From Bugula neritina (lineage: Eukaryota > Animalia > Bryozoa): DNA of 64,000 nucleotides. The stretch's first letter is position 1; every line of letters starts with the position of its first letter. A model generated the notes under the pieces. That model was not told where the DNA came from, made no database searches, and saw nothing but the letters and a program-made list of their open reading frames with translations. A program made the position numbers and the translations under genes. The stretch is taken from contig OZ037773.1 in the NCBI GenBank assembly GCA_964035545.1, positions 9,391,751-9,455,750 of the forward strand, given 5' to 3'. Shown piece by piece: positions 819-64,000 of this stretch.

Positions 819-6255
<5,437 letters not shown>

Positions 6256-8076
6256 TTTTATTTTAATTAGATATAAATTGTCAATAAATATATCATTGCA
6301 TCACTATATACCCACAGCTAGGGTGACAAAGTTCAATTTCTAACAAGTTTTGTTACATCAGTTTATTGAGTATTTTGATGACATATTTAGTTTTAGTTAA
6401 CATTTTTTTGTTAAGTTGATTAGTAGAGTAAATATTGTATCTTCTATAGATTGCTAAACGTGAGGGGCTATGTATTAGAGTTAATTGTCTTCACTTTACC
6501 TTAATCGTGAATTTGCTTCTATAGCATGTTAGCTTTGATCTTATCTTTATTTCTTAATACCAATATTAATTAATGGCTTGCATGCAGTTTCAAATCAATA
6601 GAAATTTGTCATTCCACAACAGTAAACATTTTGCATTCTCACTGCCATTCAAATGTTGATAATAGCATATTCATTGTTCATTACATTAATATTAAAAAGA
6701 AAAGTAATTAATTCAACATAAACTGCAACAAATGCTACTAAAACAACACCAAAGTATGCATGTTTACTGAGCATAGGTTGGCCTTGATAATTTCTCACTA
6801 GAGTGTTAAGAATCTTGGTTAACAATGTTTATATATTTCCTAATTTTTACCACTGAATGAATAACCTTTAAGTAGTATTATTTATCACATCTTGAAATTA
6901 TCCCACCTTGTCAATCTAGTAAGCAAAGTATCTCATTCTATAGATAATCAAGTTAGCAGTTGTCTTACCAACACCATTTTTTTATTTAACATGCTTGAAG
7001 TGCTCAGCAAAAGCACTAACACATTATTTAGTCATGACATGCAACTCTAAATAACTGTTTTTACACCTATTTAATGCAAATCACGAGTTTGATTGAGTAT
7101 TTATGTCAAATTTTTCAACACTATAAGTTTATATTCTTTGTTGACAACTCTGCATGGCAACTCAAACAGAAACTATTGCTTTATGCCCATTTATTTGGTT
7201 ATTACACAGCTGAAAATAGTCTATCGTATACTAGTTTCCTTTCGTTTAATTACTGTTGTACGTTCAACTGATTTCCTATACAAATTTATACCAACTTATT
7301 ATACCAGCTGTATGTAGCATCCTACTTCAAGCTAGCATGTGACTTCTTCAGATACGTTATCATTCTCATCCTCCATCAAACTCCTAATTCATTCTGTTTA
7401 AGAGTTAAATTATCAAACTGTGCAAACATTATGTTCATATTACCTTATATACTAGCTGTATTACCTGAAGCTTAAGTGAAGTATTATAGGCAGTACAATT
7501 TTATTTTAATCATAATAAAGAAACAATTTATTTCCTCTAAAAAGCTTATTTGTAACTGGTTTAGCATTGTGTCTTGCTCTTATTGCCTTGTGTAGTTACT
7601 ATTCTTCCATGCAGGGATGGTATAGGTTTTTATACAGCAGATAACTTGTGCAGGATCAGGTATTTAATAAATTCAAATCAATAATAAAAAATTCAAATAA
7701 ACACATCAGCTTTCTGCAACTTCTTACTCTCTAAATAGTGCTAGATCTGTGTAGTTTACTTACTATGTTCATGCAGTATAATGTTTGAATTGAAGAAGTT
7801 ATAAAAACTTATGAAAGGCAAAGCATGATTGTATGAGTATAGTTTTGACATATCTCAAAATTTAGTCATTTTTGTTTACATTTAAGTATTATTACTGTTG
7901 ATTATATAGATGACAGTTGAGCATGTGGAGATAGACAAACTAACAGCCAATCATGTGCACTTAGCTATTCATATTATATAATGCTGCATATATATTATAT
8001 GCTTGGTGCTACTGGGTCACTAAACAACTGTATGCCGAATATAATATAACTGTGTCTTATAACTAGTGTAGTGAAT
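6256..8076. repeat. Intergenic spacer, near-identical to 15581-17396 (tandem segmental duplication)
   Basis: Long colinear near-identity between the two spacers by eye. Confidence 0.9.
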
Positions 8077-11000
8077 ATGCCAACAAGTAAAAATTTTGAT
8101 AGACTTTTGGAGTTGATGGAGGAAAGAAATGAAGTTGGATTTAAGCAAAAACTAAGATCTCTGAGTCGTTCACAGCAATTAGATGTCCTTAAAGAAGGGA
8201 ATGATCAACAGGTCACTTTACTTGAATGTGCAGCAGGATGGGGTCTTACAGAGATAGTGAATGTTGCCATAGTTTCAGTACCAGCTAGTGAGCTTCATGA
8301 TATTCTAGCTATACAAGACGTTATTGGCTACACGCCACTCCATGCGGCAGCTTACTTTGGCCACACAGTCATAATGCAGCTTATAGCAAGTCTTCTGCTT
8401 ACAGCTGATCTGTATCGTCTCCTGAGAATAAAAAACAAGAATGGGATTACTGCCATACAATGTGGATTAAAGAACGGAAGAACTGAGACCGTGAAATTTC
8501 TTTTAAACTGCCTTTTTCCAGCTGACATGTGTAAAGTGATTTCAATTCCAGACAATAAAGGAAACACTGTCTTGTCTTGGGCTGCACAGTATGGACTTAT
8601 GGATGTGTTAAGACTGCTCATAGATATTATACCACCAGTAGAGCTGTATTCACATGTTCTGGTAACAGATAATGATGGTGACACAGTCATACATTGTGCT
8701 GCTTACGGGAACCAATCAGAAGCTGCTGTATACCTGCTTGACAAGTTGAAAAAAAGCCAGGTTGAAGAAATTTTAGAAATACAAAACAAAGAAAGTCACA
8801 CTTTGATTAAATATGCGAAGAGTAGAGGTTACCACGAGTTTGTGACTGTCGTTGGAGCCTATTTGAGAGATAGAAAAATCCTTCTAACTGGTAAAATTAA
8901 GCATGTTGTTGTAAGGTTTGATCACAAGTAATATTCAAATAATTAAATCTTTTTGTATATAGCATAATGATTTTTATGCACACAAACCATGCAACCATCA
9001 TCCATGCCTAATATTTGTTTACAGTGCTTTCAGTCGACTGCTTTTTTTAATAACATAATTTGATTGATGTTTTGTAAAAAAGTAAAAACATCAAGATTTG
9101 CTTTCTTTAACACGGCAATAAAAAAAGTTTTAGATTTTGGCAAATTTAAAAAGCCTATAGATGCACTTCACACTACTGCAATTTTGTGCTGTATTACTAT
9201 TTTATAGTTATATGTATTATTTCATCACATATAATTTTTATATTATACAATTACTACCATAAAACATTTTAAAGTATTTTTCTTCCAAACTGCTAAGAAA
9301 TTTTCAAACAAGTTCTATATTTATGTGTAAATAAGTTACTAATAGTTTATTAACCTTCACACAGTAATTTGAATAGTTATTTATTATTTTCAAATGTTTT
9401 TGTTGTTGAATAATTTTGCAGCAACTAAATCAGTTTATGCAAACTCTAATATACAAATAAACTTGTTTGCAATAATTTCAATCAACTAGTAAAAAGGGGT
9501 ATACTTGCCAATATTATCATTATTATCAAAATTTCGAAATTATTCTAAGTGCAATATATAGGGTTTATATATAATAATTATAAAATACTTTACTTGAAGC
9601 TACATACAATGCTACATTCCTTCTAAACATTAACTGGATTATTATAGTAACCCAAAGTAATCATTATATCTGCATAACAGATAAATCTAATTCTATTGTA
9701 GATAGAAAAGTGGATGCTGACTCACACCAAAACACAAGCTCTGCTGACAGTGGAGTATCACGTGATGTTGAGACCACTGTAGTAGACAGTGAGTGTATAA
9801 TTACTTCTTTAATACTGCAGGTACTAGATAATATATATAACTGGTGGTGGTCTATATAGTGAACAGATTACAAGCTATTATTAATTAGACAATGTGCCAA
9901 GCCAGTGTTTGATATTGTTGAGCTATAGTATCAGAGCAAGCTAGCTTTCTTTCCTACATGACATATTATATATCTAATGGAAATGATAAAAAGTTATAAA
10001 ATACATTTGTAACGTTTAATTATAGGCATGTTTCACACATGCATATCACTTTTTATATAATTAGTCAATTTGTATGACTATAGCATCAAGTTTAGAATTT
10101 GACGTTCGCCTAGTTTGCAAAACTTAGGTTTGGGGTTGCATTATTTTGTTCAAATTGTTTCTGGACAGAGAGGATTTTTGTTTTTTATTACATAAACCAA
10201 CAGTAAACATGTTGTTCAACATGTGTACCAAGTGCTAATTGCTAAATTTGACCCAGCAGCAATATTCAGGCTTTCAAAAAGTCATGTAGCGCCGGTGCTA
10301 CACTGGGCTTTAGAGGCAACAATTCTTCCAATTTTCAGATCAATATTGCATTGATTGAAATTGCTATTTCAATCAATTTTGCAATCTATTTTTATTCAGT
10401 CACATTCAATCTAATTCACACATGTTACCCAGATAGTGAAACTAAATATTTTGAAGGTAGCCCTTGTACTAGCAAGATAAAAAACAGCAGAGCTCAAAAA
10501 TTCCACAACTTCATTGTTTAGTACTTTTGACGGATTATATCAAACCAAATAAATAATTTAAATTGGCTTTGCCATTTTTTTTAAATTTTAGACTGCCTTT
10601 TAATCAGTATTCAATATACTTTTTACCAGTTTTTGAGTGTAAAAAACCTAAACATAGATCTATGAAAATCTGAAGACGGCTGCATTCATTTTGTAAGAGC
10701 TTTTTGCCATCTATGCCAAAGGGACCGTCTCGCATTGCAAAACTGTTATCAAAAAAGCAAAAATATACCTGAACTTTATTGCCTAAATTAAATGAAGTTC
10801 CAATTTTGGAGCTGGAACATTAGTGTATATTCTCACTTTCATAAATATTATATAAAACTATTTGGGGCAACATTCGAAAACCATGAGTCATGTTTTATAG
10901 TATTGCGAAAACTCTTCAAACAATAGCTTTGGTAACAACACTTTACTTGCATAAAATCATAAGCAGCTAAAAAAAACAAAATATGTTTTAGGCAGACTGA

Positions 11001-13504
11001 GTTATAATAAACATCATGCTGCAGGCTACAAATCTACTAGATAGAAACAGCTGAATGATCTAGAATGTGAATTATTCAAACTGAAAGAGGAGAAACAAAA
11101 TTTTTTTGTTAGTGTGAATGCTAAACTGTGAGTTTGCTTCATTTTTAGTAAATCACAGCTAACATAAGAATATAGATTATAAAAAAACTAACAAAGATAA
11201 AGGCAGCATTATACATGTATTCAATATTCCAGAAACTGTGAGACACCATAAAACAATATCTGACATTGCTTTGCTTGATTTGTTAAACTTTGTTGATATT
11301 ACGAAAATTTCACAAGATAAGTTTGTTTGGGATAAGCTAATGTTAGCAACAGTGAGTGCATGTAGTATTGATGAACTAGCTCACAGTAATGGTATAAGGA
11401 TACAGCAAATATCAAATGTTAGATAAGCAAAGATCGAATTTTAAAGGGGGGGAGAGGGCTGGGTAAGCCTCATTAATGTATAATATATATTAGTTGTTTC
11501 TGGTATCTTATTTTACTCAGGGCACAATGTGACATCATTAATCATGGTAAATTTAAATCAGAATAATATCAATTACTTTTACACAACGAGCAAAAAATAT
11601 AATCAAAAGTTGAAATTGTGGCCTATATAAGATGCGAAACATGTGTGAATTGGTCATTTATAGTAGGTGTGACGGCGGATAATTGTTGCTGCATCAGCAC
11701 GGATGCTGTTTGGCACGGATGCCTATGTATTGTGATTCACTTAATGAAAGGTGAATGGATGGAGGACACGATGCAGGCCACAACTCTATTTTTTGTCTAT
11801 CACCAACAGTATATTTTCTAAGTTAGACTTAGACTTGAGCTCACATTCAGACTTAGACTCATATTCATACTCAAGCTTGAACTTGAACTCATACTCATAC
11901 TGTAACCTATAACCATGAAAATTACAAAAATATTGTTAACTTAACATTAATTACATAGCTGATAAAATATTTAGTTAATAAAGTTCAAAACAAAAGATAA
12001 TATAATACTTGATACTTACAATTATTTTGACAATAAAGTATAAGCTGCCTACATCTTTAGCAGGAGGAAAATTGAGCTACACTGACTCATTGAATAAAAA
12101 TAGCTAGCAAATAGCTATCGCAAAAGCTTTCACAAATAGCTTTCGCTATAACATTGGTTTTTGGAAAGCTGCCAAAAAACTCCTGCAACAGTAGGTCAAG
12201 GTCAAATAGTGGGGCCACTGAAAATGTCTTTTCCTAGTCTAGATTTGAAAAAATACCTTGGTGCAATTCTACATGAAACTCAAGTGTTTGTTTATAGCTA
12301 ACAAAACTATCCTTATCTAAGTGGCATTTCAAGCTGTTTAAGGTGACTACCCTGACAGCCAAAAAAGTCAAGTGATGTGCTTGTTTAAGGCTTGTGTGGT
12401 TTAGCTGCTTTATTTTAACAGTGATAATGTAAACACAGTTAAATATAGACTTACCACTTACCACCATTTAATTGAAAGTTTGTCACTCTGCAAATATATT
12501 TTCATTAGTATTAATTAATAAAATTCAATTTAATATACCCAGATTAACTATAATAGGATTCGTCACTAAATTTTCACTCTTTTAAAAATAAAACACCAAA
12601 TTGTCAAAATTGAATCTCTGTTGACAAAAACAGTCTTCAGAATGTCTATAAACTTTGCATTTATTTCTTATTTTAGTGCTGCACAGTTTAGAGGTTGGAG
12701 AAAAGCTAGGCGGTGGTGGACAAGCGACAGTGTATAGGGGGACTTGGTTGAGTACCCTAGTGGCTATCAAGATTCTACCAAACTCCATGGGTATAGACTT
12801 GTCCAAGACATCATTACAGGAACTAGAGGAGTACAATGCTATCAAGTAAGAGGAAAAATACAGCTTGTTAAATTCTTTTCGAATTTGGGTAAAAACTATT
12901 GAAGACCCATTATAAATAAAATAAGGTGAAGTATTCTATGTTTAAGATGCTCATGTCTTTTGCTACAGAAACCTTCGACATCCAAACATTATCCAGTTCT
13001 TTGGAGTTGGACAGCTGAAAACAGATATAGGTCTGGTGATGGAACTCTGTGACACTGATTTAAAGATAATGTCTCAACAAATTGGACAGAGTGGAGATGC
13101 ATTGGTAAGGGTTGTTTAAAAGCTCACTTATATTTGTATATTTCAGCATTTGCTGTGCAAAGAATGTTGCTGGTTTTGTACTAAAACAAAGTTTATTGTT
13201 TTGCTAACCAACAAAGCATAAAAACTTAGTTTGAGTTGTGTTGCATTGTACTTTTTTATGTTTTGCATGTTTAAATGAGTGCATTGGTAAGGATTGTCTA
13301 AAAGCTTAATTACCTTTGTAAGTTTAAGACCTTTCTGTAGAAAATATTGTTGGTTTTACACTAAAGCAAATTTGTTGTTTCGCCAACCAACAAAGCATAA
13401 AAACTTAGTTTGAGTTGCGTCGAGTTACGTTGCGATTTTTTTATGTTTTGTGCAATATGATTGCTCGTATTTTGTGTTTTGTGATTTTTGCTTTGTGCCT
13501 TGTG

Positions 13505-13870
13505 TCTTGTGCCCTGTGCCCTGTGCCCTGTGCCCTGTGCCCTGTGCCCTGTGCCCTGTGCCCTGTGCCCTGTGCCCTGTGCCCTGTGCCCTGTGCCCTG
13601 TGCCCTGTGCCCTGTGCCCTGTGCCCTGTGCCCTGTGCCCTGTGCCCTGTGCCCTGTGCCCTGTGCCCTGTGCCCTGTGCCCTGTGCCCTGTGCCCTGTG
13701 CCCTGTGCCCTGTGCCCTGTGCCCTGTGCCCTGTGCCCTGTGCCCTGTGCCCTGTGCCCTGTGCCCTGTGCCCTGTGCCCTGTGCCCTGTGCCCTGTGCC
13801 CTGTGCCCTGTGCCCTGTGCCCTGTGCCCTGTGCCCTGTGCCCTGTGCCCTGTGCCCTGTGCCCTGTGCC
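13505..13870. repeat. (TGTGCCC)n heptamer array, ~50 copies
   Basis: Homogeneous tandem array in intron 4 of copy 2. Confidence 0.95.
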
Positions 13871-14717
13871 TTGTGCTTTGTATAAGTGTGTGTGTGTGTG
13901 TTTCATAGTAGTCCCCAAAACAGAAGCAGCTCTAACAACCTGCCTATATTAGCTGAAAAAACATACTCAACAAACAATCTGCAAAGATAAATCACTAATT
14001 TTAAATAAAACTTCACAGCAAATTTGAAAAAGCTCATAATAACTGTCATGCATAAGATTGTTCATTGTGACTTGGCAAGATGCCATGGCATTAATATTCC
14101 ATGAGTACACAACTCCTACTATATTTTCTTGTAGAATCAACTACTGAGGATTATTAAAGATTCTCTGTGTTTATCTTCATGATAAGAACATGATTCACCT
14201 GGATATTAAACCACATAACATACTGGTAGGACAAATTCCAAATTAAATAAAAAAAATGAAAATAATGCATGTTATATGTAGAATACTAGATTGATATTTC
14301 ATCTAATAATATAACGATTTGAACGTTCATTGTTTTCATGTTGACACTATATTATATACTACTGTGTTGATTGTAGGTTCAATCTGGAAGAGGCAAGCTG
14401 GCAGACTTTGGTTTATCTGACTTAGTAGAAAACTTTCAGGACATGTCTATTACGTATTCTCCATGGCAAGGTGTGTTTTGCATATATGTTTTGTTTTTCA
14501 GTCAAATTAACTTCCCTTTAAAACTTGCTATATTACAAACCTTTTAAAGCTACATATATTTAGCATCTCACATACTTCAATCTGCTCAAATTATGTACAT
14601 CACAATTCAAAGTTTTAAATATAGGAGTATTATTAGTTTTCCTGTACCAAATATAATTACTTTAAAGTTTTGTTTATCCTTCATTGCAAAACTAATTAAT
14701 ACTTAAAAATGTTTAAT

Positions 14718-14773
14718 AACACACACACACCCACACACCCACACACCCACACACCCACACACACACACACACA

Positions 14774-14864
<91 letters not shown>
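14718..14864. repeat. Compound (CA)/(CACG)/(CACC) microsatellite
   Basis: Same intron position as 5376-5530. Confidence 0.9.
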
Positions 14865-17396
14865 GGATTTTCTGAAGTCTGTTTTCCATAGAAATAATGT
14901 CTGAATTTTTTGCCTGAAAAAGCTTTTTAAACAGCAAATTAGCATTTTTTAGCTATTTTGAAAAAATGGTCATTTATAAATGGTTTTCTATAGCAGTAAT
15001 GAAACTATTTGGAATAATGTGAAAACTTTTATTGTTTCTGGTATGGTAAAATATCATTATACCATAATATTAAATAAAATTTGGCCATGTCTTTTGTCAT
15101 GGAATGAGCACAGTTGATTTATGCTTCAATTTCTTTGTTTTAGGAACTTCAATGTACAGAGCTCCAGAGCTGCTACACAGATATGCTCCAACCAAGGCAG
15201 CTGACATGTGGTCTATGGGTGTGACAGCACTCGAAGTTTTCACAGGTGAGTAAACCAAAGCAACTGATAATTACACATTTACAGCATTCTGTCATCTTGG
15301 CATGTGTGAAATATAGTTATTCTGCAGCTTCTGCACATTCATATAATTTGTATCTATAATATTTTATTCAACAGGAGAACTTCCTTATCCTTTTGAAAAC
15401 TTTGTCCGACATAAAAGAGCGAGGGTACCTAAAGATCTTCTTGACAAAAAACTTCCTCAGTCCCTCCAAATGTTGTCAAATAGAAATCAGAGAATTATGC
15501 AGCTGGTATTGACCTTTGAACCTGACCAGAGATTGCCTGCAGCTGATTGGCTTGAAAGACTGGAAAACTATCAAATTTAATTTTATTTTAATTAGATTTA
15601 AATTGTCAATAAATATATCATTGCATCATTATATACCCACAACTGGGGTGACAAAGTTCAATTTCTAACAAGTTTTGTTACATCAGTTTATTGAGTATTT
15701 TGATGAGATATCTAGTTTTAGTTAACATTTTTTTGTTAAGTTGATTAGTAGAGTAAATATTGTATCTTCTATAAATTGCTAAACGTGAGGGGCTAGGTAT
15801 TAGAGTTAATTGTCTTCACTTTACCTTAATCGTGAATTTGCTTCTATAGCATGTTAGCTTTGATCTTATCTTTATTTCTTAATATCAATATTAATTAATG
15901 CTGGCTTGCATGCAGTTTCAAATCAATAGAAATTTGTCATTCCACAACAGTAAACATTTTGCATTCTCACTGCCATTCAAATGTTGATAATAGCATATTC
16001 ATTGTTCATTACATTAATATTAAAAAGAAAAGTAATTAATTCAACATAAACTGCAACAAATGCTACTAAAACAACACCAAAGTATGTATGTTTACTGAGC
16101 ATAGGTTGGCCTTGATAATTTCTCACTAGAGTGTTAAGAATCTTGGTTAACAATGTTTATATATTTCCTAATTTTTACAACTGAATGAATAACCTTTAAG
16201 TAGTATTATTTATCACATCTTGAAATTATCCCACCTTGTCAATCTATAGTAAGCAAAGTATCTCATTCTATAGATAATCAAGTTGGTAGTTGTCTTACCA
16301 ACACCATTTTTTCATTTAACATGCTTGAAGTGCTCAGCAAAAGCACTAACACATTATTTAGTCATGACATGCAACTCTAAATAACTGTTTTTACACCTAC
16401 TTAATGCAAATCACGAGTTTGATTGAGTATTTATGTCAAATTTTTCAACACTAGTTTATATTCTTTGTTGACAACTCTGCATGGCAACTCAAACAGAAAC
16501 TATTGCTTTATATCCCTTTATTTGGGTATTACACAGCTTAAAATAGTCTAACATATACTTGTTTCTTTTTGTTTAATTACTGTTGTACGTTCAACTGATT
16601 TCCTACAAAGTTATACCAACTTATTATACCAGCTGTATGTAGCATCCCCCTTCAAGCTAGCATGTGACTTTTTCAGATACGTTATCATTCTCATCCTCCC
16701 ATCAAACTCCTAACTCATTCTGTTTAAGAGTTAAATTATCAAACTGTGCAAACATTATGTTCATATTACCTTATACTAGCTGTATTATCTGAAGCTTAAG
16801 TGAAGTATTATAGGCAGTACAGTTTTATTTTAATTATAATAAAGAAACAACCTATTCCCTCTAAAAAGCTTATATGTAACTGGTTTAGCATTGTGTCTCA
16901 CTCTTATTGTCTTGTGTAGTTACTATTCTTCTGTGCAGGGATGATATAGGTTTTTATACAGCAGATAACTTGTGCAGGATCAGGTATTTGATAAATTCAA
17001 ATAAATAATAAAAAATTCAAATAAACACATCAGCTTTCTGCAACTTCTTACTCTCTAAATAGTGCCAGATCTGTGTAGTTTACTTACTATGTTCATGCAG
17101 TATAATGTTTGAATTGAAGAAGTTATAAAAACTTATGAAAGGCAAAGCATGATTGTATGAGTATAGTTTTGACATACCTCAAAATTTAGTCATTTTTGTT
17201 TACATTTAAGTTTTATTACTGTTGATTAGATGACAGTTGAGCATGTGGAGATAGGCAAACTAACAGCCAATCATGTGCACTTAGCTATTCATATTATATA
17301 ATGCTGCATATATATTATATGCTTGGTACTCCTGGGTCATTCAACAACTGTATGCCGAGTATAATATAACTGTGTCTTATAACTAGCGTAGTGAAT

Positions 17397-20300
17397 ATGC
17401 CAACAAGTAAGAATTTTGATATACTTTTGAAGTTGATGATGAAGAAAAGTGAAGATGGATTCAAGCAAACGCTAAGTTCTCTGACTGTTTCACAACGACT
17501 AGATGTTTTTAAAGAACAGAGCAATCAACAGGTCACGTTACTTGAATGTGCAGCAGGATTGGGTCTTACAGAGATAATGAATGTTGTCTTAGTTTCAGTA
17601 CCAGCTAGTGAGCTTCATGACATTTTAGCTATACAAGACATCAATGGTCATACACCTTTTCACCAGGCAGCTTACTGTGGGCACACGGACATAGTGAAGC
17701 TTGTAAAAAATTCTATGCTTACAGCTGATCGTTATCGTCTGTTGAAGATACAAGATAAGCATGGAAATACTCCATTAGCATGTGGATTCATGAAAAAGAA
17801 AACTTCGACCGTGAAATTTATTTTAAACTGTCTTCCTGCAGCTGACATGAGTAAAGTGATTTCAATTCCAAACAACCATGGAACCACAGTGTTATCTAGG
17901 GTTGCACAGTATGGACTTATGGATCTGCTAAAACTGCTTGTAGATATTATTCCACCAGAAGAGCTGTATTCACAAGTTCTGGTAGCAGATAATGATGGTG
18001 ACACAGTCATACATTGTGCTGCTTACGGGAACCAACCAGAAGCTGCTGTATACTTGCTTGACAGGTTGACAGAGAACCAAATTGGGGAAATATTTGAAAT
18101 ACAAAACGAAAAAGGTCACACTCTAATTGAATATGCAAAAAGTAAAGCTAACCATGAGTTTGTGACTGCTGTTGAAGATTACCTAAAAAGGAGAAGAATT
18201 TTCCTAAAAGGTGAAGATAAACAACTTTTGTAAGCTAGAACTCACGCAATAACCAACTGTTTAAATAATTATGATTATGTATCTATAATATTTATGCTGA
18301 AAATGTACATCAATCTTGTTGAATATGTTATAAGGAATATTTACTTCAAGGAAATTATAGTCCTATAACACCCTGTATTTTAGACAAGAATATTCTGAGA
18401 GCAAAATAGTTTCTAATAATTGTAAACTATTTAATGTGTAGCCTATTCACCTACTCATTTCTGTCTTTGGCCATTCCTTAATATAGTAACCCAAAGTTAT
18501 AATAGTAATATATGCATAAAGGATAAATTCATTTCTATTGTATAGATGAAACAGTGCAAGCTGATTCTTACAAGAACACAAGCTCTGCCGACAGTGGAAT
18601 ATCACGTGATGTTGAAACCAGTTTGGTACACAGTAAGTGCACATATAAGAATAATTTCTTTATTGTACATGGTATTACATAAGACAAAACATGGGTGGTC
18701 TAGTAAATATTAAGACGCTTGCAGTAATCAAACTGCACTGTGTCAAAAAATGATCAAGTTTGTCGCTGGCATATGTTATTCACACTTGCCTGGTTTGCTT
18801 AGAATATAATTATATTATTTAATTTGGTTTCAGGGGAAAACTACATCTGTCAACCAAAAACTATGTTTTAAAAACTTGGAAATTCAAAGTATATAAAAAT
18901 TATCAATGTTGTATGTTTTTAGTTGACAGTTTGCAGTGCCTTAGTTGTAATAAATAAGTTGGAAAGACTGGTCTTCAAAAATAACCTTATCTGCAGACCA
19001 ATTTACTATTACATAAAATTCATGCAAGTTTATAGTCACTACATCGCTGAGAGAATCCACGAATTAAAGAGCTTAATTTTAAAGAGAAATTATGACTGCA
19101 TGCATGGATACTTTTTCTACCATCACCGATAGCTTTTGCTGGACCAATGACTTTTTGTTTACTAAGCTAACGCTACATAACCCTTAGACCACAGCTGCAC
19201 CCATCTTTTCGACACACACGTCCCTGTAAAAATCTCTACAACAAAGCCCACTTTTGAAATATAGTTTTAAGCCAAGCTGACTTAGAGTTTTATAAGCCTA
19301 TTTAGTAATAGAGCTTATAGCTTCCAGGTAACTAATTGCAGGTAGTTAATATACTTGAATAAATAGATGCCAATCTGACTATTTGTGTTTAAACTTATAG
19401 TATCAAAATACTAAAATTGAAAATAAGTTTTTTACTATGATTTCTTAATATTATGCAAACTCTTAATAAGCTATAAACTCTGCAACACTGAATAACTTTT
19501 TGTCATTTTCATCATAACTGCAGTACAGTAGATAAAAAATGTTCAGTTTGCTTTATTTTTCTAGTTTTTAAGTTTACAGTCAAATATGAGAAGTCTATAA
19601 CTATAACCAACTGTATACTACTTGGTTCTCCGTATATATACATTAAACTTTCAATTAATGTATTATATTACGATTGTAGAGAATTTTCTTTAACTGTAGA
19701 AGTAAATATAAAATATATGTACCCAGCACGTACTAAATTTTCCAGGATTTGCAGCTACTCTAGAAGCTAGTTCTACAGACAAACCTAATTGGCCAATCAC
19801 AGATGAGGCCATAGTTGAGAAATACCTGAATGAGTCAAATGTAGAGGCAGACATGATCAACCTACCTCTAAGACCATCTACTCAACTAAACACAGAAGAG
19901 GTTTACATATATTAACTAGCAACAAATTTTATTGACAGATGAATAATTTCTTCAAATTTTCTTTCAACATCAGTCTTATAATTTTACTAATCAATTTATT
20001 TTCTGGCAGTGCTATAATTAAAATTAGTCACATGAACAGCTAATGCAGTTTTATATAGTATAATTTTAAACCAAACATCAGACTGCTTGAACTACAAAAG
20101 AGCTGGGAATAATTGTTAATGAGCACCAATTTGACAGATTATATAGCTCTAATCTGTGTTTAAGGATACAGCTTTTGTTACAATAAACTAACTGATGAAT
20201 TTACAATCATCGATTTTAGAAATATTATCAGATGACATCTCCCACCAGAGGAAGGTGTCTTATCATCAACAATAGAGACTTTGAAGCTGCCTCTACACCA

Positions 20301-22487
20301 GATCAAGTAGAACTTGATAAGAGACAAGGTTCAGATGTTGATGTGGCAAACGTTTTGAATGTCTTCACTCAGCTTAATTTCATCTGCGAAGTTCACACTA
20401 ACCTCACCAGTAAGGTGAGCTGAGTCCACACTTACCTCTCTTGTAAGGTATGTTAAGGTTTATAAATAATGAATTATAGAAAACCTTCTTATACTCTACA
20501 GATCGAGTGTAAGCCAAGCATCCTACATTCTATAAATTATATCAAACTCAAAAAATAAACAATTCTCAAGTTTTACAGCCCCTTGTAATCAGTTGTCAAA
20601 CTGAGAGGTAAGCAAGAGTTTGGGTGTAGTAGCTTGTGGGTTATTGAATGAAATCAGGCAGAGAACATAACTCCTTGTTATAGAAGAGACAAGAGAGGGT
20701 GTTGAAATCCTTTAATATAGTCTTGATCCTTCTAGTCCGAGCTCCAGTCCTCAAGTGATTGAAGCTCGAAAATGGGCTTTCTTTTATACTAGCCAGCCAA
20801 AGGACTTCTAGAACCTTTGACCGACAGTGGCTATAATTAGTTCAAGATCATCCTTTTCATTCTACAAAGCGAGAATATGAAATGTATAGAAATATTTTGA
20901 ATTTCTAGGGAATGCTGCATGTGTTGAACCGCGAAATACAAAACACAGAACATAAGAGTTTTGGAGTTAGTGCCTTTATCATAATGACTCATGGGACTGA
21001 AAACTTTATCTACGGCACAGATAGTCGCCCTGTCAAACTGTCGGACATGTTGGATCTTATGTCTCCATACGTATTCAAAGCCATGGCTGGTAAACCTAAA
21101 ATAGTTGTCATCCAGGCCTGTTCTGGTGGTGAGTTTTATCATTTAACTATAATCCATTACTTTTTTCTGATATTGAGATGGAGTTGGCTGTTACATTTAA
21201 TATCTATGTTTACTCACATCTATACACATACATCCGTATACTTACGTGTTTATTTGCATTTTCCTAACAATATCATCTTTTAGACAGACATTTATTTGCA
21301 TCGAAACTTGTATATACTTGTATATACATACATCTATGCTTACATAATATATACTTACATATATACATATATCTACGTAAAAAACCTGCACTTTGTCTTG
21401 TAGACATATCAGACAGTCTAGGCTTTTATACAGACGACTCTCCAAGCACTGATGGAACAAGTCCCAAATGGAAACTTGATCCATTTCCTGGAGATCACTT
21501 GTCTACTGATGATTTGTTCTTGTTGAGAGCCAGTTTTTTTAGTGAGTACAATCACATCTGATGAAGTTAACTAGTGCTGAATGCTCAACGTTAGATAATT
21601 AATTTAATAAAATATAATTATTGTATATATGTATATATATAACTTTTTTGTTAACACTTCTCACCTGATATGTTCTGCATGTTTTGTGTGTTTCAGGTTT
21701 CCGATCAGCGAGACATACTCGTCAGGGTAGTTGGATGATCAGAGCTCTGGTGTGTTCACTGTACAATCACAGCTGTGATGAAGATATTGAGACTATCTTC
21801 AGAAAGGTGAAGCAATTTGTATACAGGAAGGTTTGGTGACATAACTTCCCTATATAATTATACTTATAAGTATACTCGAAAGAAGACATACCAACTGCTG
21901 CCATATATTTAATTTTTTTATTTAGCATAATTTTGCTTGTTATAGAGCATTCAGTAGAAATTTGATTCAAAAAACTTCCAAATAACTGTAAACATTTCTT
22001 TCAAATAAAAATTATGGTCCTTTTACAATATTATCACTTTGCCGTCATGCTGTACCTCTTAATTTTTACTGTTCCCACTGCAAGCAGTCAACACTTAGCT
22101 GCATATGCTAGCCAGCTGCTGGTAAACAAATTTGTAACTCAACAGTAACAGCAAGCACTTGAAATCTGTAACTTCAATGTGGAGAACTGTTTCAGTCAAA
22201 AGCGTGCCTTTTAATAAATAGTTATAGCTGACCGAACTATATAATAATTTATTAATAAATAGCTCTTTGTCAAGCAGTAAAACTTAAAATAATTTTTACA
22301 GGTGACAAATATTGTGAGAGCAAAGAGTATTGAAGCATCTAAAAGAGATTTCGGTATAAGAGAACAACAACCAACTTATGAATGCTTTCCAACTAAGGGA
22401 AGAAAACTTTTTCTACTTCCTAAGTTTGATCCAGCAATGCAGGTTGCACGAGTGAAATATTTCAAAATAATAAAAACTCTGTTTTAA
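17397..22487 (+). CDS. Ankyrin-repeat / caspase (peptidase C14A) fusion, copy 3 (~634 aa)
   Basis: Exons 17397-18210 (ANK), 18546-18632 (linker), 19746-19900, 20220-20414, 20909-21128, 21404-21541, 21697-21806, 22302-22487, phase-compatible and open throughout. Caspase motifs: YQMTSPTRGRCLIINN, RQGSDVD, IMTHG, GKPKIVVIQACSG, SARHTRQGSW, QQP. Confidence 0.88.
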
Positions 22488-23641: not shown

Positions 23642-24256
<615 letters not shown>

Positions 24257-24344
24257 ATTATAACATAATATTAAATAAAATTTGGCCATGTCTTTTGTCA
24301 TGGAATGAGCACAGCTGATTTCTGCTTTAATTTTTTTGTTTTAG

Positions 24345-24783
24345 GAACTTCAATGTACAGAGCTCCAGAGCTACTACACAGATATGCTCCAACCAAGGCA
24401 GCTGACATGTGGTCTATGGGTGTGACAGCACTCGAAGTCTTTACAGGTGAATAAACCAAAGCAACTGATAATTACACATTTACATGCAGCATCCTGTCAA
24501 CGTGGCATGTGTGAAATATAGTTATTCTGCAGATTCTGTACATACATAAGTTGCATTTATACTATTTTATTCTACAGGAGAACTTCCTTATGCTTTTAAA
24601 AATTTTGTTCGAGATAAAAGAGCGAGAGTACCCAAAGATCTTCTTGACAAAAAGCTTCCTCAGTCTCTCCAGATGTTGTCAAATAGAAATCAGAGAATCA
24701 TGCAGTTAGTTTTGACCTTTGAACCTGACCAGAGATTGCCTGCAGCTGATTGGCTTGAAAGGCTGGAAAGTTATCAAACTTAA
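24345..24783 (+). pseudogene. Orphan last two exons of a further ankyrin-kinase paralogue
   Basis: 24345-24446 (GTSMYRAPELL...EVFT) and 24578-24783 (ELPYAFKNF...LESYQT*) match exons 7-8 of copies 1 and 2. I saw no upstream kinase exons between 22487 and 24345. Confidence 0.85.
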
Positions 24784-26028
24784 TTATATTCTCATTTCAA
24801 TCACATTGATTATAAATATATCAATATATGTTTTACTACAGCTAGGATGATAGCAATCTATTTCTAATAAATTTTGTAGTAGCAGCTTGAGTATAATGAA
24901 AAATAGTAAAAGTATATTACTTAAATAATCTTTTTGTCTATGTTGATTAGCAAAATCAATATTATAGATTGTTAAAATTGAGTGACCATTTGATAAGTGT
25001 TAATTGACTCCACTCTGGTTTAGTTTGTGATTTTGCTTTTAAGGTGAAATATTTGATATTTTAATTTCCAGGTAATTCAAGTTTTTCAATATTATGATAT
25101 TATTAAATTGCTTGAAATTTCAAATCAATACAAACAATAAATCTGTTCAAATGCAAATACCAGTCAGTATCTTAATTGTTCAATAATTAATTGAATTGCA
25201 GTAAAAGTCTTCAGCCAATACACCTGATCTACAAAATATTCTGCTGTCAAGTTGAGAGTACAAGAGGCGAATCAAGCTCCACTAACATTTACCTAATACT
25301 TTTTGTAAGCAGATGATGTAACAATTTAGTAGCTTAAAACTAAGCAATGAGAAGTTGAAAAACGTCAATTAAACAGCACAAATCTGTCAAATTACGGTTT
25401 GCATCTAACAAGGTAAAGTGACGTCTGTATTTCCTACAATAAAATTACCTGCATGTGTTTCTTATGGGTTTAAAATAAAACTGAATTTGATTTATTGTTG
25501 CGGCTCCTGAACAGCAGTGAAAAAGCAAATTAACAAAACGACTCTGCAAAAAAGATTTTCTGAAGATTTGCAATAGAAACAAAACAAGGCCTGAAGTTAC
25601 TCTTATAAAGGTTTTGAAAAAATGTCCATTAATTTTCATCATAATTGAAGCTACATATACAAATTGCTAATTGCTAATACCGCTAATAAAAAGGGTAACA
25701 TGTATTATAGTTGATCCGCTGCATAAATACTAATTTGTAATATTCAATTATATAATGCTATAATATATTAGTTCATTGTAATGGAATAGTTTGAATAACA
25801 GTAATGAAACTTGTGAAAAGAATGAAAATTGTTATGCCAGATAAATATTGCATTGTAGAATTTGTTTGCTAGTGTTTTAGCGTTTCATAAAGTGAAATAG
25901 ATTCAGCTAAAAATATTCAAGATATTTTTGAAGAATTTGTATAATTTATCAAAAGATAATGCTGAGAAATAATTTCCAATTTCATTATAGTATGATTTTA
26001 TCACACCTCAAAACTTGCATGTGTAAAC

Positions 26029-30461: not shown

Positions 30462-33400
30462 CTATGATGCATTTCGTTTCCGGAATGGAGCTCGAGATAC
30501 TCTTTTCCTTTTACTTTTTGCTGCAGGTGAGTTGATTGCTGGATCTAAAGACTCTGAAGGTGGACCTGCTGTAAATTCTGGTATTGTGGGAGGTGGTGGG
30601 GCCGATCTGGAAGGAGCCCGAGATCTGGATTTATGAGTTGGTGTGTTCGCTAATGGTGTAGAAGATGTAAGTTGTTGTGAAAGTGGGGCAGCAGATTGAG
30701 GTAAAGATAGAGACCTGTCTTTTTGCTGGGACTGCAAATTTTCCAGTTCCTGTGCTTGGCGTTCAGGAGTTTGCTTTGATAACGTCAACATTTGCTGTAA
30801 GGATGATGAAATAGCTGGCAGTGGTGATGATTTATATTTGTCTATGACGTGTGGGTGAGAGGGTGTGTTGTTTAGGAGAAGAGGTTTAGAATTTATTGGA
30901 CCTGGCTTTTCGATGAGAAAGGAGTCATAATTGGTCATATTTGGCGAATCATCAGCCACAGCCGCTGGTGGTGGTTTAGAGAAAAGTTTATCCATGGCAT
31001 CAGGTTGAGATGGCGTCTCATTCAATAGTTTTGCGGCAAGAAAAGAGCCATAACTGTTAAGTTTTTCATCTTGGAAATTACCAGCTGCAATTGTTGGCCG
31101 TGAGGGTCTAGAAGAAGATTTGTTTATGGCCTGTGATTGAAATGGCTGGTCGTTTAAAAAAGGGGATTTGGAGGGTATTCTACCATGTTTTTCAAAAAGA
31201 AAAGAGTCATAACTGTCTAGAGTGTCATTTGGTGTGTCATCAGCCACAGTAGCTAATTGTGGTGGCTTAGAAGGAGATTTATCCATGACAGGTGGTTGAG
31301 ATGGTGTGTTGTTTGCAGTAGGAGGGTTGGGAGATATTGGGCGTGGCTTTAATGTGAAGAAAGAGTAATAGCTGCCTTGAGGTTCATTTGGTAAATTGTC
31401 AGCGGCAATGACTGGTGGTGGCGGTGGCTGTTTAGGAGATTCAACAATGGCCTGTAGCTTAGCCAAGATGTCGTTTGCAGGAGGAGGGTTGGGAGGTGTT
31501 GGTCCTGGTTTCATAGTAAAGAAAGAGTAGTAACTGCCTTGAGGTTCATCCAGCTCAGGTACAGCTGCAGTGGTTGGCGGGTGAAGCAAAATACCTGGTG
31601 ATGACTTTTCGGCAGGTTTCTGCATAGGTGCAATTGATGAGAGTTTATCAAAAACTTCCTCAGGGGGCTGCATAAAGTCGAATCTCCTTTCCAGATTAGC
31701 TGAAGTAGAGCAGCCAGGGACCCCCTGAGCAGTGTTCAAGGTCGTATAATAAGTTTTAAAGGATCCAACTGGCTTGGGCTCCAACCCAGCTGCTTTGGGG
31801 AAGGTTGGATCTATTGCACTCGGTTTGGGGAGAGTGGGATCCAACGCTTCTGGTTTGGATACTATAGGTTCTGATGGAGCTGGCTTGGGCGGCTTGGGTT
31901 CTGATGCCACAACATTTGTGGCTTCTTCTTTATGTGCTGTTATAAATTGTGGAAGCTCTTCTTTCTTAAGCTCTTCTACTCTATTAGTCCTGTAACTTCT
32001 CCACATGTAAAACAGTGCCACTCCAAAGTACACCCAATTCCATATCTGCATCAAAAAACAGGAAGAATAAGGTAGGTAGCTTCAAATAACTTTCAAATTT
32101 TAGCAACTCTTGTTAAAACACTTTACAAAAATGTGGATAAGAAGATGGGGAAATCGAAACAGTCTATAGTAAACAAGTATGCTATGAAACTGTATTGTAA
32201 ATTACCATGAATGGAAAAATGGTGAAGTTAAGAACCCAGTTTAGATGATTAGTTGCTTGCATCTCTTCCACGCCTGCTGTTTGGACGCCTGCAAATAAAT
32301 GCAACAATTAGGCAGAACAGAACTTTGAAGATATCTAAATCAAAGAATAATTTTAATTGCTAAACAAAGTAACTTGTTAATCTTTGAGCATCTAATTTTC
32401 CAATCCAAAAAAATGGATATAAAGCTGCATGCAGCAGTTTGTGTTTGTATAACAGCTCAAAACTGCTAGACAGTAACGTCCTTTGGCCACAACAGAATTC
32501 AATGTTCTACATATACTACTTTATTAGCAGTTGGTTTTGCTGCATAGAATTCTATTCAAAAGCTTACCTTTACGTAGTGTCTGAATTCCAGATACAACTA
32601 AGAGGATAATATATGCAAGAGTGAGGAAGAGGTATGGAATGGCTAGCTTCCAGTACTTCACCTACAGGTAGTGTAAAATGTTGGAGAACACCAATGAGAC
32701 TGCAAACAGTTATTATAACTGAGCGGGGGGGGGGGGGGGGGGGGGGGGGGGAGGGGGCATGTGACACATCTACTCTATGACTCATTTCTATATCAGGTGG
32801 ACTGTGCAAAGATACAAGACGTCAAATTTTATATGTTTAAATTTTGAACTCTGTTATTTAGCTATACCCATAGCTTGCAACTATAGATATCAATTCGAAA
32901 GCTCCTGATACTCTTTAATAATGTGATTAGCATAGTATGGTATAGGCTATATCATTTTAGGTGTTATGATGCGGTATAGCATTATGTTATGAGGGCTATG
33001 GCCAACAATGAAAAAAAATGTTAAAATGCATGCATTGATATTTATAGTAATATTCTTATACTTGTGTTGTTGAGACAATGTGTTTAGTAAAGAGTTATGT
33101 TCTCCCCTATCGTACAATTTTAATGGTCTGAACTATGTTATTTTGGGCTTACAGATTGTTTGAGATTATAGAAAATATGACCAAATGTTTTTACTTTGTA
33201 TTTATTGATTCTACTTAGTTACATAAAGTTATATTAGAGAATGGCTAATCTTAATTTGAAATTTAAAATCTTAATTTCAAATAAGATAAATAATAATAAA
33301 AGCGTTTCCTTGATTTTTCTAAATTTGCTCAAGTTTAAGGCAGCAATTATATATTTTATGAAACTGCTTTTAATTTAATATAAATTTAGAACTTGTTTTT

Positions 33401-58000: not shown

Positions 58001-61000
58001 GTCTATTACTTCAGATTTAAACTATTCATGTAAAAACATATTTTAAGCTACGTCAAGTAAAATAACCAGAGTAGGGGAGATAATTACCTTTCGGAGAGAG
58101 AGGGGGTGATGGTGGTCAGTTGATTGTGAGAGAGTGAGAGAAACTCCAGCTCTGAGTTCCGTGACGCTGTCAGAGTCAGCTGCGTAAACTGATTGTAACT
58201 CAAGTCTATATCCACCACTGTGTCATATCTGTAAATAACTATAACTATATCCACCACTGTGTCATATTTGTAAGTAACTATATTTATATCCACCACTGTG
58301 TCATATCTGTAAGTAACTATAATTATATCCACCACTGTGTCATATCTGTAAGTAACTATATTTATATCCACCACTGTGTCATATCTGTAAGTAACTATAA
58401 TTATATCCACCACTGTGTCATCTGTAAGTAACTATAACTATATCCACCACTGTGTCATATTTGTAAGTAACTATATTTATATCCACCACTGTGTCATATC
58501 TGTAAGTAACTATAATTATATCCACCACTGTGTCATATCTGTAAGTAACTGAAACTTAGTTTACAGCTTTTCACCTAATATCTAATGGTGAATGACAATT
58601 GGAAAATAATTTAGAAATTATTTATGATGAATTTCCTACAACTGCTAACAAAAATTTCATCAGTGACTATTTTTAAAATTGATGTATGTTTTTTGGCACC
58701 GACATGATGTCCAAAGTAGTGTACAAGCTCCCCCCTCCCCCCACCAAACTAGCTACAAATCTACATATGTAGGGAGAATACAAAACCCAACCTCTACCTG
58801 TACAAACATAACTTACATCTTGTTCAGTATATTTGGATCGGAGAGCTCATTGTAAGACATGTTGAACTTCTGTAGCATGGTGAAAGTGTCCCATTTAAAG
58901 TTCAGTATCTCCTTTATATGGTTGTTGCTAGCGTCTAGCTCTGTGAGGAAGGGGTTCGCTGGCAAATAGCAGTTTACATATAGTAGAATATACAGTAATA
59001 TAGTATACAGTTATATAATATACAGTAATATAATATAATATAATACACTGTAATATAGTATACAGTAATATAGTATACAGTTATATATTATAATATAGTA
59101 TACAGTAATATAATACACAGTAATATAATACACAGTAATATAGTATACAGTAATATAATATAATATAATATACAGTAATATAGTACACAGTAATATAATA
59201 CACATTAATATAATATACAGTAATATACAGGGGGAACAACTCACTGTCTCTAAAGTCTAAGTTTCTGATGTGGTTTCCTCGAAGAGATAAATATTCGAGT
59301 ATTGAAAGTCGTTCCCACACTGCGGGGTCTATCTCTGTGACTCCACAGTTATTGACTTGTAGTCTCTTCATACTGCCCCACGGTACTCTGTAAGTAATAG
59401 TTATACACTGTAGGTAATAGTTATACACTGTAGGTAATAGTTATACACTGTAGGTAATAGTTATACACTGTAGGTAATAGTTATACACTGTAGGTAATAG
59501 TTATACACTGTAGGTAATAGTTATATACTGTAGGTAATAGTTATATACTGTAGGTAATAGTTATATACTGTAGGTAATAGTTATATACTATAGACTATAG
59601 AGTAATTAGGTAACTAGTAAATAAAAATTATTCATTTAATGGGTAAATGAATTAAACTAAACTACTTTTAAATTTACCTTGAAAAGTATATAGTCCTATT
59701 TTAGAGAAAAGATTATTAACTAATGGGGCTGCCACACTACAGTCCAAAAGCCATTTTGAACGCGTTTTCGAGGCCAAGCGCTAACCTCTGTGACGTCACA
59801 ACTGTCTGATTTCTGAACGCAACTGCGGTGAAAGTTCGACATGGCGAACGCTCAACTTCAGCGATCAGCCAATCACTGACTGGCAGATAAGCCCTGATTG
59901 GTTAGTGCTTTTACTTATTCCACGTGCTACTAGCGAGCATTATTATTTGATTTGGTTCTTCAAAAATTATATTATTTTACTTTTAACATAATTATGATGA
60001 AGTTATGTACGAAAATCTTAATAAATTATGAAAATAAGTATTTATTAGATAAATTTTGCTAAATTTTATCTGCATAATATTTAGTTTTTCTAATTTGGTT
60101 GAATTTTATTATCGTATTTAGTTCTTTAGGCTACTGAATGAGCTTGAATAAAGCTAGGTAATCTCATTAAATAAAGCTAGTAATTTCGAATAATAAGCTA
60201 GTCAATTAGAATAAAAATAACTAGTAAATCTCATTAAATTATGCTAGTAATTCTCAATAAATTGCGCTAAATTTGATTGCTGGTTACTGTGGATACTGCA
60301 AAAACTGAGTTATAGCATTCCTATTGGTTAAAAGTTTACTGCGGGGCTAGAGACAGTTAGCTTTCATCGTTCGTAGTGAACTGTAGTGTGACCAGCAAAA
60401 AGTAGGATGTGACGTTGAAGGTATGCGCGAGCAGCTCCAAAATGGCTGCCACAGTCGAGTTTCGACTGTAGTGTGTCATAAGCATTACAGTTTACATTAA
60501 ATCAGTAATAGTATTATTTATGGTTTGCCAAAAATTTAAAATTTAAAACTACCAAGTTGAAAAATTATATAATTTATATATCAATTCCCTCGAGGTTTAT
60601 CAACACATAATTTGTTAAGTTAAAAGTTAAAATAGTTTATAAACGCATAATATTTCACCTCACAATGTCTGTGTCTTTGATGAAGTCTATTGAAGTGAGA
60701 GCTGGCATATTCAGTAGCTTTAGTTCTTCTAAACTTGATATAAAACTGCTAAATGAATTGATAGTTATAGTGTGAGCATTCGACACCCCATCCAAGGTTA
60801 GAGATTTAAGGCTATCCAACACCGTTGTGTTCAGAAACGTTAGAGATGGTGGAACGTCGCAGTTTACCAGCTCCACAGAAGAAATCTACAGCAAGTATGA
60901 ATAACTGCAGAAAATTGGAAACACTGAATTTTGATACATACATGTTCCAAATGAAACACCGCGAATCAGTTTCATGTGATCAACGAAAATGAAAACAAAT

Positions 61001-62567: not shown

Positions 62568-64000
62568 CGCTCTGTGAGAATCTAGAAACAGGAGAATTGC
62601 ATTTAGCTGCAGCAGTAGTCCAAGTGTGAATACTGTAGGTGGGCACATTAACAGAGAAATGTAGCAACAGGAGTTATGCTTTCATGTGAGTTTCAACATA
62701 CACCCAAAAACCAAATGAATAAAGAAAATTAAAGAACTTGAGCTATTGAAAATTCTTTGTCATTGATGGGAGAAAAGAAGAAAAAAATCATGTAAATATA
62801 CGTTTTAATTGAATCAGTTTAGAAGTTTACAAGCTCTATATCTCAATCTACCAAAACCAAATGTTCCCAGAAGAGATTACAATAGAAAATTATTAAACCG
62901 AACTCTGCTAGAAACTATAAACAATACCTGAAATAATGCTGAAAGAATGCTTCACAAAATTTGACCTGTAAATCGTAATATTTCACCTCAAGGCGTGGAG
63001 GTTTTCAAACCGCAATATATTGTCAATATTATGAATAATGTTGTCAATATTACAAACAGTATTTTTTATCCCCTCCCAAACCTGTGGGGGTGGGTGACAA
63101 GGAGTAAAGGGGTGTGTCAGTCAAAGTGATTAAAAGTCAGCACCTATTAAAGGCAGCATATAGAGGCAGCTATGCAAGTGAAATAAGCTGCCAGATCAAA
63201 TAACAAATATAATTCTAAATTACATTAAGTAGAACAGTTCACTGACCAAATCTTCATTAGAAATCAGGCTAACAAATAAAGCTTAGTTGTTGAGGAGCTG
63301 TGAAGGTGAGCTTAATAATAGAAGTTACCTTACCTTGAACAAAATAAAGACAATAGTCACAATAATATCCAGAGTAGTACAAAGTCAGCGTGACTGAACA
63401 AGCAGCATATGAAGTCAACCCCTGCAGCTGTGAGGATTGAGTCAGCAGTGAATAGTATTAACAGCATAATTATATTTAATTATTACCAATAAATTATCAC
63501 CCTGAATGAGTGATGACTCAATAATAGGAAACTGAAGAATAAAGCTGAGGGTTTGTAGACCACCAGTGATATGGGGTCACGCCATGTGGCCATAAGAGTG
63601 GCCATAGTATGGTATGCTGTGGACTTTAGCACTGCGGTGTGTCATATTGACTAATCTAATAAATTCTACTAGTTTACACTTTTGTAAGCTTCTGCAGGCA
63701 GAATGAGAATGTGTGCCTTTAATAATCACCTAATATGGTCAGTTAAAGAGCTTGCAGTCACGTGATGTGACTTATACACTAGCAACACTTTGGGCAGTTT
63801 AAAGAAAGCTTTAAATATTGTTTCCAAGTCATAATATAGATAAAACTAATTATAACGAGTGTTGAACACCACAAAATCAACTAAAATACTGCATAGTTCC
63901 AATATTAAGGAAAAAGAATCTGTATTAAGTGAAGCAAAAAAAATATTTAGCTTATAGTAGAGGTGAAAAAATTTCAAATCTTCTGAGTATATACTATATA

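Follow-up and report, generated by a model that had tools for sequence, protein, structure and literature searches.

A predicted ankyrin-caspase gene of the bryozoan Bugula neritina and its probable exon exchange with neighbouring ankyrin-kinases

Caspases with an ankyrin (ANK) prodomain were reported in 2024 for parasitic flatworms, where they were first seen in Schistosoma, and in one case for the annelid Alitta virens (PMC11463336). The survey in question, 'Evolution of Apoptotic Signaling Pathways Within Lophotrochozoans', sampled molluscs, annelids, flatworms and a single brachiopod but did not include bryozoans. The ANK-caspases were placed next to the DED caspases and an initiator role was proposed without functional data; those of the flatworms were described as a peculiarity of the parasitic species and associated with parasitism and DED-caspase loss (PMC11463336). 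In our literature search ANK-caspases were named only in this survey and its preprint, and no paper on bryozoan caspases was found. The genome paper of Bugula neritina mentions neither caspases nor ankyrins (PMC7576161). Here, a stretch of 64,000 nucleotides from this bryozoan was analysed (contig OZ037773.1 of assembly GCA_964035545.1, positions 9,391,751 to 9,455,750; in the following "the window"). The gene at 17397-22487 of the window is predicted to encode an ANK-caspase with full catalytic dyad and complete Asp-binding S1 pocket.

With the proteins of flatworms and Alitta the bryozoan gene model shares the ankyrin prodomain N-terminal to p20 and p10, the lack of CARD or DED and the lophotrochozoan host. 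In contrast to those of the flatworms, the bryozoan ANK-caspases occur in a free-living colonial host, at no fewer than 14 loci, and their ANK module is common to kinase genes. The architecture is thus of a known kind, that of a caspase with ANK prodomain; new are the bryozoan phylum, the large family and the visible exon swap with ANK-kinases. An earlier interpretation of the same stretch, made from its letters without database searches (the sequence-only reading), had named widespread and already characterised ANK-caspases as a finding that would speak against it. Such caspases had indeed been described (PMC11463336), but functional characterisation was not part of that description.

The window has about 32% G+C, is rich in microsatellites and is intron-split, all of which mark it as eukaryotic DNA. 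The gene model consists of eight exons (Table 1) with matching phases and GT-AG borders throughout; its 1905 nt encode 634 amino acids (aa) and the stop codon. No internal stop was found, all 14 splice sites are intact, and the model ends exactly at 22487. An AATAAA signal overlaps the final codons in exon 8, and the last approximately 17 residues are found in no other copy. The encoded protein is composed of a seven-unit ankyrin solenoid, a linker of about 80 aa and a complete p20/p10 domain. Hence the long N-terminal ankyrin domain stands in the same reading frame as a full caspase domain, as the sequence-only reading had proposed; the limits it gave coincide exactly with the coding region, and each feature it listed was recovered at its place. 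By tblastn, six more paralogues with the same exon set were found within 90 kb, and the set is therefore not a product of chance. The same exon order was seen in the independent B. neritina assembly GCA_010799875.2. Nearest among annotated relatives is an AUGUSTUS model in GenBank, 'CASP2 [Bugula neritina]', which has matches to Pfam Ank as well as Peptidase_C14 and in which exons 3, 4 and 6 are joined to an ANK exon of the same type. This model is automatic, incomplete and without the catalytic exon; it was found by a word search with the ANK exon, and its caspase part found itself only. Altogether, 17397-22487 is most probably a real and intact eight-exon gene, as modelled from genomic DNA.

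The caspase domain was identified by profile and by alignment. Exons 4, 5 and 7 score 33.1, 39.5 and 32.0 bits against Peptidase_C14 (PF00656), each alone above the gathering score of 21.4 (E-values of 5.8e-08, 6.7e-10 and, for the open reading frame (ORF) of exon 7, 1.3e-07). Against solved structures, exon 5 matches CED-3 (3e-9), caspase-3 (2.7e-7) and caspase-8 (1.2e-6), and the His and Cys line up in these matches. MTHG (H445) and QACSG (C488) align with the motifs around His121 and Cys163 of caspase-3 and with those of CED-3. Exon 4 aligns to zebrafish caspase-3a (1.9e-8) and to caspase-8 (5.7e-6), with RQGSDVD over RNGTDVD at the position of Arg179. In exon 7, SARH lies over S339-W340-R341-H342 of the caspase-1 p10; taken alone, this piece is weak (E 0.12). 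The equivalents of caspase-1 R179, H237, Q283, C285 and R341 are thereby R387, H445, Q486, C488 and R542. The gene accordingly has a profile match, the His of a (S/T)HG motif, the Cys of a QACxG motif and the S1 equivalents of Arg179, Gln283 and Arg341, by which membership in the caspase family is judged. Both the catalytic His/Cys pair and the two S1 arginines picked out in the sequence-only reading are borne out by these alignments.

The same reading had called QACSG atypical, and this did not hold. When the 30 genomic p20 exons closest to exon 5 are compared, QACSG is the commonest state (10), followed by QACAG, QSCAG, ETCSG and EVCSG (4 each) and by QACGG and EACSG (1 each); the remaining two alignments end before the motif. 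Since QACSG is the commonest motif in these nearest exons, it is not peculiar to the gene at 17397-22487. The caspase motif is also written QACXG, with the fourth position treated as variable (PMC7836458), and the string QACSG itself was not found in any caspase paper by literature search. The more notable departure is Ala541, which occupies the position of Trp340; in the paralogues the residue there is A, T, M or K. A large subgroup of the p20 exons of the genome (on C1, C3, C5 and C6 in our numbering) reads ETCSG, EVCSG or EACSG and so has Glu for the S1 equivalent of Gln283. This exchange could change the P1 specificity or could mark pseudo-enzymes.

With caspase-8, caspase-3 and CED-3 the gene has in common the His and Cys motifs, the equivalents of R179, Q283 and R341, the GSW motif and the order p20-linker-p10. 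Furthermore, the start of its p20 resembles YQM-S-PRG-CLIINN of caspase-8. It differs from these enzymes in QACSG instead of QACRG or QACQG, in Ala at the Trp340 position and in a prodomain formed by an ANK solenoid instead of a death fold or short peptide.

The ankyrin domain is contained in exon 1 (Pfam Ank_2, 1.6e-23). An AlphaFold2 model of this exon has a mean predicted local distance difference test (pLDDT) of 94.8 and a predicted template modelling score (pTM) of 0.88, with twenty helices grouped in threes. The best Foldseek matches of the fold were a DARPin, gankyrin and repeats 8-14 of AnkB, with target-normalised TM-scores of 0.79-0.86. TPLH-like anchors are spaced exactly 39 residues apart (47, 86, 125, 164, 203 and 242). 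Because of this spacing and the helices in threes, the domain is modelled as an N-terminal three-helix cap followed by six ANK repeats of 39 aa, each with an extra helix. In total, 352 aa precede the p20, which fits the long prodomain (more than about 90 aa) of initiator caspases. No death-fold domain (CARD or DED) was found in exons 1 and 3: Pfam gives only Ank families in exon 1 and no match at all in exon 3, the linker encoded by exon 2 being unscanned. A phmmer search with the ANK exon returned only short exon-like ORFs at high identity and generic ANK proteins. A protein of Haliotis rufescens (XP_048241358.1, 1878 aa) has a caspase-like region at 29-252 (24% identity to the caspase domain of the bryozoan gene, E 9e-16) with ANK repeats C-terminal to it, that is, in reversed order.

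Candidate processing sites were located in both linkers. The acidic stretch DISDSLGFYTDDSPSTDG begins directly after QACSG; the codon of its first residue, D491, spans the junction of exons 5 and 6 (21128 and 21404-21405), and the remainder lies in exon 6. D494, D502 and D507 are the candidate processing residues in exon 6, in agreement with the acidic intersubunit linker with Asp sites that had been noticed from the letters. T-[D/E]-D followed by S-P-S (D502) is kept in nine of ten aligned copies, and the most divergent copy reads T-D-E-S. In exon 3, V-E-A-D336 is followed by M. The P1 Asp of this site is invariant in all 11 aligned paralogous copies of both genomes, with the general pattern V-x-x-D followed by [M/I/T]-I-N-L-P-L-R. 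D336 and D502 are the best candidates for removal of the prodomain and for intersubunit cleavage, respectively.

Next to the caspase, the locus contains genes in which the same type of ANK exon is joined to a protein kinase (Table 1). With the neighbouring ANK-kinases the gene shares this exon type, the 87-nt linker exon and the phase-1 intron; it differs in its effector, which is a caspase and not a protein kinase domain. The ANK exon shows 68-74% protein identity to the kinase-linked ANK exons (68-69% to copies 1 and 2) and only about 25% to the arrays in the older caspases. The whole genome has just five ANK exons of this type, all of them in the cluster; two belong to caspases, two belong to kinases and the fifth is partial. 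Kinase copies 1 and 2 have homologues of exon 2 behind their ANK exons (2678-2806 and 9701-9784), and none is present in the five older ANK-caspases of the cluster. Exons 3-8 have 60-100% protein identity to four older ANK-caspases, and 42-59% to the most distant copy in exons 3, 6 and 7. The gene and its twin copy upstream are thus chimeras, with an ANK exon and first linker exon of kinase type and with exons 3-8 from older ANK-caspases.

Downstream of the gene, traces of such an exchange are preserved. A foldback palindrome is built of inner arms of 200 nt each (23750-23949 and 23950-24149, 97% complementary) and outer arms (23642-23795 and 24103-24256, 88% complementary). Their sequence corresponds, in both orientations, to the K4-K5 intron of the kinase genes, and the palindrome is a rearrangement scar. 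The orphan kinase exons behind it, 1.8 kb downstream of the caspase stop, are still open, and 24055-24877 shares 87-91% identity with the kinase genes. These exons would be the remnant of the ANK-kinase gene that received the caspase exons. On the simplest reading, an ANK-kinase gene lost its first four kinase exons and received caspase exons 3-8 in their place. A phase-1 intron follows both the ANK exon and the linker exon, so that the swap was frame-compatible. Intron 2 of the twin is 95.8% identical to that of the gene, which indicates a single swap followed by segmental duplication. In the independent B. neritina assembly, two genes likewise have caspase exons behind an ANK exon of kinase type. 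Because it is present in both assemblies, the chimeric architecture either predates the divergence of the two genomes or was kept in both.

For the selection on the single parts, the ratio of nonsynonymous to synonymous substitutions (dN/dS) was calculated according to Nei and Gojobori between the gene and its twin. The values were 0.23 for the p20 (dS 0.14), 0.33 for linker plus p10 (dS 0.35), 0.57 for the ANK exon (dS 0.26) and 0.90 for exons 2-3 (dS 0.12). These ratios show purifying selection on the protease and much weaker constraint on the prodomain. The ANK exon is 85% identical to that of the twin at the nucleotide level, and the adjoining introns 1 and 2 are higher (91% and 96%). Against kinase copy 2, the dS of the ANK exon is 0.27-0.37, and the upstream spacer diverges by only 4%. 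Since dS is raised as well, the history of the ANK exon differs from that of its flanks, by conversion or exchange on the scale of the exon, and is not merely one of faster protein change. At the positions that match the randomised face of designed ANK proteins, taken as the binding face, the mean entropy over seven ANK exons is 1.08 bits, compared with 0.575 elsewhere (none of 20,000 permutations was as high). The binding face has thus diversified. Positive selection on this face is not supported, dN/dS there being only about 0.5-1.2.

The best explanation for the whole, to which we assign a probability of about 0.6, is a functional caspase with an ANK recruitment prodomain, activated by clustering. 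The predicted enzyme would cleave after Asp. Its ANK solenoid would act as a protein-recognition or recruitment module, the part that CARD or DED plays in apical caspases. On binding a partner or ligand it would gather the zymogens, and these would dimerise and undergo self-processing at the conserved sites T-D-D502 of the intersubunit linker and V-E-A-D336 between prodomain and p20. With the CARD/DED apical caspases (caspase-2, -8, -9 and Dronc) the gene shares a long N-terminal interaction domain, the protease domain and Asp sites in the linkers, and by analogy their logic of recruitment followed by proximity-induced activation may be expected here too. The difference is that the bryozoan recruitment domain is not a death fold. 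One ANK module serves a kinase or a caspase, with paralogues that differ mainly on the binding face, and this points to a role in recognition coupled to cell death. Whether the setting is immunity, allorecognition or the cyclic degeneration of zooids is speculation.

Several points weigh against this explanation. Ala in place of the Trp340 equivalent may change or tune the S2/S4 subsites. An older ANK-caspase of the cluster (C9:9346917-9347135, at about -44830 of the window) has an in-frame TAG in its catalytic exon, and two B. neritina copies of the other assembly carry frameshifts or a stop. The former is a pseudogene, and from these copies together it follows that the family sheds members. 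The linker exons have a dN/dS of about 0.9, and the binding-face codons, at about 0.5-1.2, fit relaxed constraint as well as diversifying selection. The word search with exon 5 returned genomic exon ORFs of JGI metagenomes only and no RNA-derived fragment, and the word searches likewise yielded no protein derived from RNA. Finally, activation by upstream cleavage instead of dimerisation would also fit the sequence.

The last point leads to the alternative that survives best, although we consider it rather unlikely: an executioner-type constitutive dimer which is cut at the conserved Asp by an upstream caspase, and in which the ANK domain only localises the enzyme or inhibits it until D336 is cut. 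The scores of exons 4 and 5 against CED-3 and enzymes of caspase-3 type are about equal to those against caspase-8 or higher, prodomain and p20 are separated by a conserved Asp site, and at least 140 p20 exons make cascades of paralogues plausible. In contrast, executioner prodomains are short and the one found here has 352 aa. The N-terminus of the p20 (YQM-S-RG-CLIINN) resembles that of caspase-8, and the ANK-caspases of flatworms adjoin the DED caspases in the published tree (PMC11463336). None of these three counterarguments is decisive. Among the functional readings, the apical model is regarded as considerably more probable than the executioner model.

A further alternative is a young chimeric duplicate whose frame is open but which is functionless, silent or weakly expressed and on its way to a pseudogene. 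A place beside a foldback and orphan kinase exons, the scar of a rearrangement, would suit such a gene, as would the TAG in the catalytic exon of a neighbouring paralogue, the fast evolution of the ANK and linker exons and the word searches without RNA-derived match. However, all eight exons and 14 splice sites are intact, the low dN/dS of the p20 was obtained at a dS of 0.14 from the twin, the catalytic and S1 residues are all kept, and the same chimeric architecture occurs twice in the separate B. neritina assembly. We therefore judge this alternative improbable. The weakest proposal, two transcription units of which one would encode ANK repeats only and the other, beginning near exon 3 or 4, a caspase with a short prodomain, can draw on an in-frame Met in exon 4 (aa 357, KYYQM) and on the automatic annotation of the older assembly, which often gives ANK-only proteins in the cluster, but is very improbable because exons 1, 2 and 3 agree exactly in phase, the ANK exon runs without stop to a consensus donor at its end, an ANK exon stands upstream of the caspase exons in all seven copies on C9 and at the loci on C2 and C5, and the AUGUSTUS model 'CASP2' joins both parts.

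The ANK-caspase gene belongs to a tandem array, which was mapped over 144 kb (80 kb upstream and the window) with the model and the kinase exons as tblastn queries. Its members are listed in Table 1. Matches to the Pkinase profile were obtained with the kinase exons of copy 1 and with the orphan exon at 24332-24451. The catalytic loop of ANK-kinase copies 1 and 2 reads HMDIKPHN, and these kinases are therefore non-RD. The same intron of both copies contains a minisatellite with units of 21 nt, which is open in several frames (13361-13952 with about 22 units, 4337-4609 with far fewer). Two further features of the window were observed on the reverse strand. At 30462-32054, a single open frame of 530 aa is proline-rich and internally repetitive, with recurring motifs of the type SYYSFFT-KPGP; at 58084-62648, exons resembling leucine-rich repeats are unrelated to the cluster.

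Table 1 Features of the gene at 17397-22487 and of the surrounding cluster, in window coordinates; negative positions lie upstream of the window
Feature	Position	Strand	Remarks
Five ANK-caspases	about -72 kb to -32 kb	+	Long ANK arrays, ~25% identical to exon 1 ANK
Two ANK-kinases	from -31145 and from -23927	+	
ANK-caspase twin	-14933 to -9804	+	27 kb upstream of the gene under study
ANK-kinase	from -8526	+	
ANK-kinase copy 1	819-6252	+	Pkinase
ANK-kinase copy 2	8077-15577	+	
Upstream (promoter or intergenic) region shared with kinase copy 2	16000-17396	+	95.7% over 1408 nt to 6672-8076
ANK-caspase	17397-22487	+	Gene under study
Exon 1	17397-18210	+	Start codon and entire ankyrin domain, aa 1-271 and first base of codon 272; followed by phase-1 intron, donor GTGAAG
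Exon 2	18546-18632	+	87-nt linker exon of ANK-kinase type, aa 272-300, phase 1 to 1, thus skippable without frame change
Exon 3	19746-19900	+	Caspase-type linker exon, aa 301-352; splice sites fit the frame
Exon 4	20220-20414	+	p20 start, aa 353-417; R387 at 20322-20324
Exon 5	20909-21128	+	p20 catalytic core, aa 418-490 and first base of codon 491; H445 (20990-20992), Q486 (21113-21115) and C488 (21119-21121), the last two within QACSG
Exon 6	21404-21541	+	Acidic intersubunit linker and p10 start, aa 491-537
Exon 7	21697-21806	+	p10 core, aa 537-573; R542 at 21711-21713; GSW motif present
Exon 8	22302-22487	+	p10 end and stop codon, aa 574-634; homologous exon in paralogues
Foldback palindrome	23642-24256	strandless	TA-rich core; downstream of the gene, just upstream of the orphan kinase exons
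Orphan last two ANK-kinase exons	24332-24780	+	100% and 93% protein identity to copy 1; Pkinase 1.7e-08

In the whole genome (216 Mb, 321 contigs), exon 5 gave 140 matches at E ≤ 0.001. These p20 matches are mostly clustered in tandem, on C1 (32.5-35.5 Mb), C6 (2.5-6.3 Mb), C7, C5, C4 and C2, and the caspase repertoire looks very large for an animal genome of 216 Mb. An ANK region followed by a caspase on the same strand was found at seven loci in the cluster on C9, on C2 at 26.76, 30.51-30.55 (four loci) and 31.06 Mb, and on C5 at 0.35 Mb. The resulting number of at least 14 loci is a lower bound, based on co-occurrence of coordinates and on loci read in the sequence. The ANK-caspases of this bryozoan thus appear to be a tandemly expanded, lineage-specific family. 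Among public B. neritina proteins, none is closer to the cluster than 77% (ANK) or 89% (p20 exon), and the GenBank matches (locus tags EB796_0130xx) are all on one contig of 254 kb of GCA_010799875.2. Symbiont-metagenome runs from 2016 contain only 5-6% of the sequence words. The genome analysed is therefore of a different strain, either from a near relative or from a diverged lineage within the B. neritina species complex.

A large family in a free-living bryozoan undercuts the reading of ANK-caspases as an outcome of flatworm parasitism. Furthermore, the local exon shuffling in the cluster suggests that the fusion of ankyrin and caspase can arise repeatedly. The locus presents a route for its origin, in which a phase-compatible ANK exon recombined between kinase and caspase genes, with the scar still visible. 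The gene at 17397-22487 and its twin also offer a compact and intact construct for the question of what an ANK prodomain does to a caspase.

Bryozoans show conspicuous programmed tissue turnover, with polypide degeneration and metamorphosis, and colony recognition. As a tentative and rather doubtful extension, the cluster could be a modular recognition-effector system, in which a rapidly diversifying ANK sensor cassette of 39-aa repeats is exon-shuffled between a death protease and a kinase. The interest of the locus rises if the ANK cassette proves to be such a diversifying sensor coupled to alternative effectors. In this case the cluster would resemble the immune receptors of NLR type in its logic, built from ANK and caspase or kinase parts, and its one-chain receptors, on recognising a pathogen, a symbiont or a non-self colony, would directly trigger cell death or signalling.

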